Assembly: GCA_019828565.1 (NCBI GenBank)
Contig: JAHDYR010000053.1
Location: forward strand, 1,090,272 to 1,154,271
Origin: Carpediemonas membranifera BICM
Lineage: Eukaryota; Protista; Fornicata
Direction of reading: 5' to 3'
Length of the DNA stretch: 64,000 bases
This document shows, one piece after another, positions 36,274-57,240 of this stretch. The position numbers and the translations under genes are program-made. Under the pieces are notes generated by a model. That model did not search any database. It was given only the letters and a program-made list of their open reading frames with translations, and had not been told where the DNA came from. The first letter of the stretch is position 1; each line of letters starts with the position of its first letter.

Positions 36274-36323
36274 TTCTAGTGTCATAAATAGTGATGAATT
36301 CTCCGGAAGACCTCTTTCAATTG

Positions 36324-36877
36324 CATCATTTGATTAGCTGAACCATCATTCATACCATCCCCCTTGTTAACCACCGACCGGCAAATATGCGCCCTCGGGG
36401 TGCGAACTGTGATGTCGAACCACTGAGCCAAAAGGGAAAACCCGGAATTCCATTTTATTTATTCCTCAAAAGCAACCTGAGCGCGGAAGGCACTGACACA
36501 GGTAGCCTAGCCAAAACATCTGACCTGAGATGGCTGTGTCACACGATAGGGAAGATTAAAAGGTACCGTCACCCACCCCAACAGAGGCATTGTTGACCCG
36601 GCAATTACCCTCGGCAAGGGCGAGTGCGATGTCAATCTTGAGCCGGTGGATGTCCCAGCGACTCGGGGACTGCGGGTCGTGGCGAGACTTAGAGCCCGCC
36701 ATCGCCGCGATCTCCTTGAGGAAGTCGAGTGAGCTTGCCAGAGAAGCGAAGCCATCAGCGCCCAATGCAAACGGACGCACGTCGGGCTTGTTAGCCTTCT
36801 TGTACTTCTCAAGCTTGTGTTTCTCCGCACCTCGCTGGTTATTGGACACTGCGGTTTCCACATCATTTGATTAGCTG
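36324..36877. repeat. 17-bp target-site duplication CATCATTTGATTAGCTG (36324..36340 and 36861..36877)
   Basis: Exact direct repeat bounding the insertion. Confidence 0.9.
36341..36860 (-). mobile_element. 5'-truncated CRE-like non-LTR retrotransposon insertion (end of REL endonuclease region plus 3' UTR/tail)
   Basis: Frame 36556..36861 reads AEKHKLEKYKK..VRPFALGADG..LDFLKEIA..RLKIDIALALAEGN, the ExxKxxKY...PF...GN pattern of R2/CRE-type C-termini; flanked by an exact 17-bp direct repeat. Confidence 0.8.
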
Positions 36878-36933: not shown

Positions 36934-37541
36934 ATGGTCTTCAGCTTCGCAAATTGGTTCCTCAACATGCTTTCCTACCTTGGGCTCTATAACAAGAAGG
37001 CCAAACTGGTATGCTCATTCTATTCTCACTCACATAGGTATTCTTGGGCCTCGACAACGCAGGCAAGACCACCCTCCTTCATATGCTCAAAGACGGGAAG
37101 CTTGTGCAGCACCAGCCGACGTTGCACCCCACAAACGAGGAGATCCGCATGGGCAAGATCACCTTCTCTGCCTTCGACCTCGGAGGGCACAAGGAAGCCC
37201 GCCGTATCTGGCAGGACTACTACGCCAAGTGTGACGCTGTTATCTATATCGTGGACGCCGCTGACCACGAGCGCATGCAGGAGTCTGCCGAAGCCCTGCG
37301 CGAGCTGCTTGAGTCCGAAGAGCTAGCTGGCGTGCCCTTCGCCATCCTTGGCAACAAGATCGACCGGCCCGACGCCTGCTCTGAGCCCCAATTTATGCAG
37401 ATGATCAACATCCACACCACTGGCAAGCAAACGACCAAGGAGGAGCTCGGCACGACCCGCCCCATCGAGGTCTTCATGTGCTCTATCCTGCGCAAGACTG
37501 GCTATGCCGAGGGCTTCCGCTGGATCGGGCAGTACCTCTAG
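36934..37541 (+). CDS. SAR1: COPII small GTPase Sar1; 29-nt intron at 37009..37037
   Basis: [46 protein letters not shown], GFRW. Confidence 0.96.
37009..37037 (+). other. Spliceosomal intron, 29 nt (SAR1)
   Basis: GTATGC...CACTCACATAG; removal restores the frame. Confidence 0.92.
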
Positions 37542-54300: not shown

Positions 54301-57240
54301 ATGTCCGAATTGCCGGATTTGCCAATGGCTGCATCAGGGCTCATTGGGCGATAGCCTCAGCCCAGCCCCGGCGCCGAGTCCCGCCCCTGCTGCCCGAGCT
54401 CGCCCAGCCCTATAGCCCGGACGGTGTCCAGGTGAGACGATGCGTGACATCGCCCGTGCAGCAAACACTACACTAGTGCGGCGACTGACGGCTAATCTGT
54501 CCGTAGCCGATGACGGACGCCGTGCCCGTCTCCTCATTCGCCATGCTGGACACTGGCGCCGCCCAGTTCGTCGCCTTTGACCCAGCCCATCCCGACGCTG
54601 CTGTACCACCGTCGTTTGCTTTGGTCGGGTTCCATGCCTGCACGGTTTAATGGCGCTGCGCAGTTTTGACCGGGCTCGGGTTGACCCTATGTGGCGTGGC
54701 ACGGCGCTTGTCGGTATGGCCCAGGTCTACCTCAACCCCGAGGGGATTCCCCACAATGTCTTCGCTAAGAACCGCACAGACGAGGAGACACGCAACGTAG
54801 CCAACGCTGTCCAGATCATCCGGGAGGCAAGGCCGCTCCTCACCGCATCCGAGCTGGTCTGCCTCGAGATCGGGTGTTGCTATCGTCCGGGGTGACTCCA
54901 AGGACCAATGCGAAGAGCTCCTGTCGCGGTTGAACTCTCTTGTAGCCAATGACCCGACGATGGACATAAGTTTGAAGCGACACTCGGCTTTGACGAAATT
55001 GCACGTCAACAAGGACACCAGTGCTCAAGGAGCTCAATAAGAACAGTCACATCACGCCAGAGCAAGCAGACGCGTACGTCGAGGCCATGCTTCTCGATCC
55101 GGACCCTCAACCCCGAATCCACCCAAACTTTATGCTTTATTCGCACAACCTCTGATGGCGGCTCGTGATGTCCTGGACGCCCAACATCGCCCCCCTCGCG
55201 GAGTTTGTGCTCACGGTCGTCAAGTTCAGCATGACCCGCACCCCGAGGGCGCATATTTGCCTATCCAGCGGCCCTCTCGCCCAGTCCAACCGCGAGAAGC
55301 TTGTCGCTGCCCAGTCGCCCGAGCTCTTCTTGATTGTCAAGGAGACCGTCACTGGCTTCGGGGGCTGAGTGCTGGGCCTCGACTCAGACATGGCCGGGAT
55401 CCGCCAGCTCCTCAACACCCTCCGGGACGAGGACACCAGCCCAGAGACCATGGCCCGCGTGTGGTCCGTGGTCGCCATACTCAGGGCCAGGCCGCCCGTC
55501 CTCCCGCCCTGCCCGACCTAGAGGCGCTGGCGATGGACTCCCTGGCCCACCACAGGCTGACGGACCCCGACTACACACTGACTGCGGACCCCGTAGACGT
55601 CGCCTATCTCGCTGATGTGGCGGGCAGCGTGTATCTATCCATCGCCCAGCTCCTCCACGCCGACCCCAGCCCAGCCCTGGCCCAGTTCGCCGTCAGTCGG
55701 CTGCCCACGGCATTCCTCGGCCTCAGTGAGACGAGCGGCAGCACCACCCTCGCATACGGCACATACGCCCTGCTCAGCATGCTCGTGGCCCAGGACGCCG
55801 TGCCGCTGGCTTACCTGCTCACTACCATTGAGGCCGTCCTCTACTGCCTCGGCGTCGGTCTCCACACCTCTCTGGCCGAGGTCCTGCCGACGATCTCCCA
55901 GGGCTTGAAGCGCGTGCTGGCCAACTCCACCGACGCCTTCGCCCTGTTCCCCGTGACGGCAGTGTTCAACTCCCTGACGGCGTACTTCTCCTTGGTCACG
56001 TCACTACCGCACGCCCCGGTCAGTGTCGTCCTCGGCGGACTCATTGGCTTCCTGCACAACGCCTTTGGATCCGCCCGCGCCGTTGCCCCGCTCCCCAACC
56101 TCTCCGTCGACCTCACAGCCCTCGTTGACCAAGCCCTCATCCCCAACGGCATGCCCGGGGTCTCCCCTGTCATCGCAGCCCTCGTGCAGCTCTCCAAGGG
56201 TCCCGCCGGGCAGTGCCTGCTCGCTGCTGAGGCCATCACCCTCCTCATCCAGGCGGCTGGCACTCGGGCGGTTGCCGTGACCATCGCCGACGCCCTTCCC
56301 GTCCTCGTCGGGCGATCTCGCGGTCATGACGCACGGGTCAGCCGAGGGTGCGGCCGACGCCCAGGCCGTGCTCGACATGCTCCACGTGCTGCAGACGATC
56401 ATTGCATTCTCGGACCCCGACCTTGCCGTTGATTTAATCAAAAGCTCGATGATTGTTGAGAAAATCTTCAGATCGCCAAGACCTGGAGCCCCATCCCTCT
56501 TCTACAAGCTCCTTGGCGCTCTGCCCGTGGGTGCCCCGTCTGGCACCCTCGCACACGCCGCGACACCCGCGGACTTCTACTACATCGCCCTGACGCGGGC
56601 CGCCCAGCTTCTCTCGGCCATCGTCGCCCACCTTCGCTCCCCTGCCGAGCTCGCGGGTATGCTTGAGGCCTGCACCGCGATGATCACCCACCTTGCATGG
56701 GCCGACCTCCACTCGGGCTGCGACACCATCGCCGTACAGCTCTCGACGGCTATGATGACCATCGCTTACTACTCTGTCGGCCACGCCAAGGCCGGGAACA
56801 TCAGAGCCGCTGTCGTGAGCCAGTACCCTGCCGTCATAGCCCATTGCCTCGCCGCGTTGCCCGGCCAAGAGAACCCGGCGCCCATGGTCAACCTCGTCGC
56901 GAAGTCCGTCCGCGCACTTTATGCCTCTGTCGAATGGAACGTTACAGAGGCGCAGGTTCAGAAGCCTATGCCGCCCGTCGTCATCGAGGCGACTAAGAAC
57001 GTCCTTGCGCACTTTACAGTCGGTATTGACACGGAGCAGTTCACGCATGCGTGGGTCGACGTCATTGAGGCGGCGCTTATGGTTCTCTTCCTCTCCGGCG
57101 ACGACTTCAAGGGCATGACCACCGTTGTGGGCCGGCTAACTGCCTGGTACGGCTCTGTGTGCTCAATGGACAAGGCCGCCTCTAAGTCGAGGCCGATGAC
57201 TGTGCTGCACACGGTGCTGAATAGGGTCACGTCGGGATGA
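54301..57240 (+). pseudogene. Large helical-repeat (HEAT/ARM-like) gene broken by many frameshifts: pseudogene or poor consensus
   Basis: Coding-like codon usage hops between ORFs 54650..54895, 55165..55368, 55155..56432 and 56326..57240; 5' boundary uncertain. Confidence 0.55.

Follow-up and report, generated by a model that had tools for sequence, protein, structure and literature searches.

An 87-nt foreign insert in a retroelement copy of Carpediemonas membranifera: a probable one-off chimeric retrocopy, or possibly a repair scar, and not a sequence-capture system

Introduction

Does the tail of a retroelement in a free-living metamonad keep a record of sequences taken from its host? The question is raised by a stretch of 64,000 nucleotides of the Carpediemonas membranifera genome (C39:1090272-1154271, hereafter the window), in which the original prediction described an exact 25-nt copy of a gene located 19 kb away, carried in the 3' tail of a retroelement among segments punctuated by GGTT, and proposed a candidate sequence-capture system. 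Three options had been offered for this tail: (a) a cumulative record of earlier target sites; (b) small RNAs captured during target-primed reverse transcription (TPRT); and (c) a guide or silencing cassette directed at host loci. To our knowledge, the mobile elements of this metamonad lineage are essentially undescribed. The published genome comprises 24.2 Mb in 69 contigs with 57.1% GC (PMC8516963), and the genome searched here amounted to 24.24 Mb in 69 contigs.

Results

A 25-nt copy of a pseudogene located 19 kb away

36380..36404, minus strand: 25-nt pseudogene copy, in element sense and gene sense
55237..55261, plus strand: donor 25-mer, on the pseudogene patch most diverged from the intact paralogue
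54301..57240, plus strand: frameshifted member of a multi-copy gene family encoding a helical-repeat-like product, with indels of 19 and 8 nt relative to the copy on contig C7

Read on the plus strand, positions 36380-36404 are the exact reverse complement of 55237-55261 over 25 nt. No match for the 25-mer arose in shuffles of the window, and a scan of the whole genome (24.2 Mb) with up to 3 mismatches found it at these two places only, which confirms that the exact copy exists and does not result from chance. Homology is lost sharply at both edges of the pair, as had been described. Comparison of the strands also bears out the predicted orientation: on the element strand (minus), the 25-mer runs in the coding direction of the gene family at 55237, and hence in the sense of both the element RNA and the gene mRNA. 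There is thus a real 25-nt copy of a nearby gene within the 3' tail of a non-LTR element that is 5'-truncated and flanked by a target-site duplication (TSD).

The donor gene belongs to a small family, with an intact paralogue of 1068 aa on contig C7 (L046:413-3619:+) and fragments on C9, C24, C67, C8 and C37. The C7 gene is the founder of this family, which includes the window pseudogene; its product is alanine/leucine-rich and probably of the helical-repeat type, and neither Pfam nor solved-structure searches of the family gave a match. The C7 and C24 paralogues align collinearly with the pseudogene over the 25-mer, where they differ from it at 8 and 7 of the 25 bases, respectively. Since the paralogues differ to this extent, the tail 25-mer was copied from the 55237 copy itself, 19 kb off in cis, a distance that a random genomic place would satisfy with a chance of about 0.16%. 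The donor site is uninterrupted, with no element inserted. Over 2,082 aligned columns, the pseudogene diverges from C7 by 5.4%, and the densest 15-nt cluster of substitutions (8 substitutions at 55245-55259) is located inside the donor 25-mer. All five first codon positions of this patch are unchanged, and for this reason it looks like old coding divergence and not like random replacement. The most diverged patch of the pseudogene overlaps the captured 25-mer.

A 5'-truncated copy of an apparently R2/CRE-like element

36324..36340: left TSD copy, 17 bp, catcatttgattagctg, the same 17-mer being found at 36861-36877
36861..36877: right TSD copy, 17 bp, the same 17-mer as at 36324-36340
36467..36860, minus strand: 5'-truncated element body, made up of the final 101 ORF codons (36556-36860) followed by the 3' UTR (36467-36555)
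36341..36379, minus strand: canonical 3' end of the element, 39 nt, composed of the terminal module (GGTCGG-TGGTTAACAAGGGGGATGG) and a short tail ending in GGTT

The whole 5'-truncated composite element occupies 36341-36860 on the minus strand, between perfect 17-bp direct repeats, and its body (101 codons and 3' UTR) shares 74-87% DNA identity with at least 20 other genomic copies. In a longer relative (L002), the ORF runs on into a CCHC motif and then into an RPD..D..K endonuclease-like region; when read by eye, these motifs appear as C..C..HH..CC followed by RPD, D and K at the spacing of R2-type endonucleases, and the window ORF retains the KPD portion of the endonuclease-like motif. A Pfam search of L002, the longest relative (503 aa, a part downstream of the RT core), gave no match, nor did a search of the element ORFs against solved structures (PDB); the protein clusters of the Atlas nearest to the L002 ORF carry RVT_1 (score 0.96). 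Judged from the motifs read by eye, the element appears to be an R2/CRE-like non-LTR element of the restriction-like-endonuclease type.

The hallmarks of TPRT are all present, namely a variable 5' truncation, a common 3' end and TSDs. The family copies with TSDs range from 70 to 520 nt in length, share the 3' module and are flanked by duplications of 8-17 bp. Lengths of 70-333 nt were recorded for the other copies whose duplications are recognisable. Among nine copies, each target duplication has a sequence of its own, which indicates that the family is not site-specific and lacks the single specific target of CRE, SLACS and R2 proper. Short copies of 70-140 nt with TSDs, together with extra bases at the 5' junctions, are encountered; the family is prone to abortive early synthesis. 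The RT-bearing neighbour element at about 57.3-61.0 kb was considered as the master of this copy and rejected, its 3' end and C-terminus being without similarity.

The motif CATCATT occurs at 36326-36332, at the far end of the TSD, and at 36346-36352, on the cDNA strand of the terminal tail. At a distance of 17 bp from the nick, the target offers a possible pairing partner for the AAUGAUG of the element RNA tail; this may reflect a microhomology used in target choice, or chance.

A 26-nt module conserved at the 3' end

The terminal module of 26 nt has 33 genomic matches at up to 3 mismatches, with the consensus G(G/C)TCGGGTGGTTAACAAGGGTGA(T/G)(G/T)G (L061-L090; the window copy is listed at 36341-36366). 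Our census of 3' ends covers about 35 other copies, five of them belonging to the subfamily of the window copy and about 30 to sister subfamilies, and in these the module comes directly after the 3' UTR. The five copies of the same subfamily read ...GCTTTGT(C/T) straight into GGTCGGGTGGTTAACAAGGGTGATGG and a few bases. Downstream of the module stands AATAAAA or TATGA, with 0-9 further purine-rich bases before the TSD; the mixed A-rich tails ending other copies consist of AATAAAA and purines. The module is common, almost unchanged, to retroelement subfamilies with unrelated upstream UTRs and is more conserved than the ORFs, and it is likely to be a recognition site for the RT. In most copies the GTT or GGTT found near junctions opens the TSD itself, as in GTTGTTGACGCA, GTTCGACTCC and GGTTACGC, and reflects a target or pairing preference, not a delimiter.

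Direct pairs of modules about 3.43 kb apart were also observed (C1:44124/47557, C11:643265/646688, C18:18043/21468 and C54:464982/468410, corresponding to L076/L077, L081/L082, L085/L086 and L090), some of them 20-50 kb from contig ends and with repeated downstream flanks. The ORFs readable near these paired modules are short and gave no match in Pfam. The pairs may be head-to-tail arrays of elements, possibly subtelomeric.

Anatomy of the 87-nt insert

36453..36466, minus strand: A-rich 14-mer, AGGAATAAATAAAA, resembling the mixed A-rich tails of other copies
36408..36452, minus strand: 45-nt copy of a 44-bp mini-transposon (reference copy L032:1484-1527:+)
36405..36407, minus strand: GTT linker from the mini-transposon copy to the 25-mer, with candidate origins only

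Between the body of the element and its canonical 3' end lies a clean insertion of 87 nt (36380-36466), placed exactly at the boundary between UTR and module and without loss of element sequence. It is unique to the window copy, none of the approximately 35 other copies being interrupted there. On the element strand, the insert is composed of the 14-nt A-rich tract, the 45-nt mini-transposon copy, GTT and the 25-mer. The A-rich 14-mer and its junction with the mini-transposon were found at no other place in the window or the genome. The GTT linker could be a non-templated addition, a flank of some further source or a part of AGTTC; the latter sequence is also found 10 nt upstream of the donor 25-mer in the gene, a weak link to the linker.

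At the right junction, the last 3-6 nt of the 25-mer (TTTGCC) overlap the TTTGTC/TTTGTT of the canonical element, and MAFFT aligned the terminal GCC of the 25-mer with the canonical GTC/GTT/GCT, which gives a microhomology of 3-6 nt, TTTG(C)C. No templating from the flanks (±500 bp) was detected, the longest match of 8 nt being at chance level. Neither the tail nor the 44-bp unit folded better than shuffles, and Rfam searches of the tail and of four mini-transposon loci returned nothing meaningful.

In two other copies as well, the 5' edge of the module is the point of a break. One (L062:1501-1540; C6:881717) is a module-only fragment in otherwise unique DNA without a clear TSD; in the other, L064:1480-1526 (C8:632884), a 9-nt stutter, GGTCGGGTT, directly precedes the module. 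With the window insert, three discontinuities are thus located at one module edge.

The 44-bp mini-transposon family

The 44-bp unit is dispersed in 13 genomic copies (L032:1484-1527, L034-L044 and window 36408-36452) with sharp ends (TGTGG...TCACA), and perfect 4-bp target duplications surround 5 of the 10 other full-length copies (binomial p ~4e-10). With its TG..CA termini and its short TSD of fixed length, it is a miniature transposon of the integrase type; its size is well below that of usual MITEs or solo LTRs, and no autonomous partner was identified. The window copy is the most diverged (A>T, +TTT) and has neither the first TG nor a 4-bp TSD, which indicates that it was copied in and not transposed. 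Around CCCTTTTGGCTCAG, the unit presents what we take to be a resemblance to the dinoflagellate spliced leader. Its identification as a spliced-leader RNA was rejected, as the leader-like sequence of the RNA contigs described below differs from it and the unit has transposon-like TSDs.

The neighbouring SAR1 gene

The SAR1 transcript contig starts only about 35 nt downstream of the retroelement insertion. The SAR1 gene has a GT..AG intron of 29 nt (37009-37037), which is spliced out in the RNA contigs. Two different RNA contigs (runs X1-X3; SAR1 5' end, 36894 onward) start with the same leader of 23-25 nt, CTGGACCTTGGCTGTCACTCAAA(AG), joined at AG. The assembly contains no copy of this leader, even when mismatches are tolerated, and the leader represents either an adapter of the library or a spliced leader whose genes were not assembled.

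GGTT does not delimit captured segments

The (G/A)GTT motifs are located where they had been reported, at 36341, 36369, 36405, 36418 and 36439. Their reading as separators of captured segments fails, since 3 of the 5 GGTTs fall within longer units found unbroken at other genomic places: what had been cut into ttcccttttggctcagt, ggtt and cgacatcac is one contiguous piece of the 44-bp mini-transposon, and the last two supposed segments (ggtcggtggtt / aacaagg...gat / ggtt) are the normal end of the element. GGTT as a delimiter was rejected, the motif lying inside conserved units or at the first bases of the TSD. When the tails are aligned, the variable nested arrays that had been anticipated in other copies are replaced by one invariant and uninterrupted tail, shared by about 35 copies. 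There is no repeated delimiter with variable units and the structure exists in one copy, which removes the basis of the proposed capture system.

Discussion

Template switching and its rivals

The locus is real and ordinary: a one-off chimeric retrocopy, or possibly a repair scar, and not a capture system. The anatomy of the composite, the uniqueness of its insert, its donor, the single TSD and the position on the module boundary are direct observations. The best explanation, on which we place about even confidence, is a single accidental chimeric retrocopy generated by serial template switching of the element RT during one integration. The polymerase would be the RT of the element, the templates would be RNAs and the switches would have followed this order: TPRT would start at 36340/36341 on the conserved 3'-terminal module of the R2/CRE-like element RNA; the RT would copy 39 nt to the 5' edge of the module and lose its template there; it would move to a sense transcript of the pseudogene 19 kb off, entering at the TTTG(C)C microhomology, and copy 25 nt; the next template would be a transcript containing a copy of the 44-bp mini-transposon; the RT would then resume on an element RNA cut short immediately before the module, landing on the A-rich 3' end of that RNA, and copy 394 more nt before the 5' truncation, the product being sealed in one 17-bp TSD. 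Transcription of both the pseudogene and the mini-transposon would be presupposed. On this reading, the composite has no function and is a fossil left by a poorly processive, template-jumping RT.

Several observations are in agreement with template switching. A single perfect 17-bp TSD flanks the whole composite, so that one integration suffices and nested insertions are excluded; as in known chimeric retrocopies, one duplication surrounds unrelated sequences and the 3' end of the element adjoins the target. The insert stands on the exact 5' edge of the module, where L062 and L064 are also broken, and the family is prone to abortive synthesis with extra bases at 5' junctions. An RT landing on the 3' end of a tailed RNA would be expected to leave an A-rich tract such as the 14-mer after the upstream piece of the element, and this tract is in tail sense while the 25-mer is in mRNA sense. 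The copied tracts of 25 and 45 nt have distant or unassigned sources and no local templating. The CCHC motif followed by RPD..D..K, as read by eye in the longer relative, is the layout of R2/CRE-type endonucleases, and R2-type RTs are able to jump between separate templates with non-templated addition to give one cDNA (PMC8857657).

Three features are less easily accommodated by template switching and lead to its main rival, the repair of a break at the UTR/module boundary after integration, by alternative end joining or microhomology-mediated switching (Pol theta or MMBIR-like, possibly on RNA), an explanation that we consider possible and rather unlikely. In the repair version, a 3' end copies three distant templates in turn and re-anneals through the TTTG(C)C microhomology. 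The element is contiguous without loss, which obliges template switching to assume in addition that the RNA was cut there or that the RT returned precisely, and which repair accounts for as a clean insertion. The 3-6 nt microhomology at the right junction, the one junction with a known source, also fits a sense-strand synthesis returning to its first template, as in break repair. The donor 19 kb off in cis is explained more naturally by DNA proximity, an RNA donor requiring a local nascent transcript. The DNA repair of this lineage is moreover unusual: C. membranifera lacks Ku/NHEJ and has a complete set of alternative end-joining genes (PMC8516963). Against repair, typical Pol theta scars are local, of 3-30 bp, with primary tracts rarely above 10 bp (PMC7165422), whereas the tracts here are of 25 and 45 nt with nothing drawn from the ±500 bp of flanking DNA. 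Repair also requires a second rare event within a 520-bp copy whose TSD stays perfect, and a chance landing on the exact module boundary that bears two other discontinuities of RT type. An assembly or consensus artefact in this repeat-derived region can hardly be credited: the sequencing runs found hold small parts of the window and none spans 36304-36638, but the TSD and flanks are coherent, the insert is built of genuine classes of genomic sequence, an internal chimera of 87 bp is atypical of long-read assembly error and short reads at high depth were used to polish the published assembly (PMC8516963).

The three options of the original prediction fare as follows. Option (a) would make it a cumulative record of earlier targets, acquired by read-through, with one master at 55237. 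It draws on the GTT that precedes the 25-mer and the GGTT that precedes the TSD, (G)GTT being often the TSD start elsewhere. However, the site at 55237 is intact and collinear with its paralogues, and no hidden insertion allele is expected there since the genome is reported as haploid (PMC8516963). A read-through flank should furthermore follow the terminal module and not precede it, the TSDs of the family measure 8-17 bp and not 25 or 45, and no intermediate copies exist in the genome; option (a) is largely refuted and very improbable. What stands of option (b) is the uptake of foreign RNA during TPRT by a template-jumping RT, which is close to the best mechanism; its small-RNA part is speculative. 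In that version, the RT would need only a detachable module and would routinely jump at its 5' edge onto nearby RNA 3' ends, the 25-nt and approximately 45-nt pieces being complete small RNAs, which we consider improbable. If true, small RNAs would have left a natural record of themselves in the DNA of this tail, 25 nt being the size of a Dicer product and the source pseudogene adjoining retroelement debris, and the sharing of the module would explain the same 3' end in unrelated families. Option (c), a programmed capture giving a guide, a silencing cassette or a spacer array against host loci, could invoke the 25 nt of the copy, which falls within the size range of diplomonad small RNAs. It is contradicted by the anatomy of the genome: the structure is present in one copy among about 35, the other copies have no pattern of delimiters and variable spacers, 3 of the 5 GGTTs are inside conserved units, and neither a structure signal nor an Rfam match was obtained. 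We assign it almost no probability.

One candidate "sequence-capture system" is thereby removed, and what takes its place is a clean natural case, in a free-living metamonad, of several templates combined into one chimera at the 3' end of an early-branching non-LTR element that appears to bear an endonuclease. The three independent discontinuities at the exact module boundary provide a lead to the site of RT binding and release. The analysis also brought out the conserved 26-nt 3' module of several families and the 44-bp mini-transposon family.

Comparison with known systems

Template jumping by R2-type RTs was reportedly the subject of earlier work by Bibillo and Eickbush. As in R2 of Bombyx mori, one continuous cDNA would here be made from physically separate templates, with jumps at template ends and sometimes a few added bases (PMC8857657), and the element would belong to the same enzyme class, which has a C-terminal restriction-like endonuclease. 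In contrast, the jumping of R2 is an in vitro property and that of the window element is deduced from one genomic fossil; R2 is also specific to rDNA, whereas the window family is found at varied sites. The U6-L1 chimeras are L1-mediated chimeric retrocopies in which the foreign RNA forms the 5' part. Like the window composite, they join several RNAs in a common orientation, place the element's 3' terminus at the target and have a single TSD around the whole. Unlike in L1 chimeras, the foreign pieces of the window stand between two contiguous parts of the element, and a return to the element RNA is needed.

The CRE/SLACS/CZAR and NeSL elements and the Genie/GilM/GilT elements of Giardia belong to the early-branching non-LTR elements; each encodes one ORF that has a CCHC motif, and a PD-(D/E)XK-like endonuclease follows the RT. 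The window family appears to share this layout. The window family differs from the CRE/SLACS group by having no specificity for the spliced leader or rDNA, and by a 3' end made of the 26-nt module and a short mixed A-rich tail instead of a plain poly(A). A head-to-tail arrangement has been reported for the telomeric elements of Giardia, and some members of the window family may likewise stand in such pairs, 3.4 kb apart. Pol theta insertions and synthesis-dependent MMEJ resemble the window insert in their multiple patches, microhomology at one junction and intact flanks (PMC7165422), and the organism probably relies on alternative end joining (PMC8516963). The window templates, unlike those of Pol theta insertions, are not local, and its tracts are longer than those of typical primary synthesis (PMC7165422).
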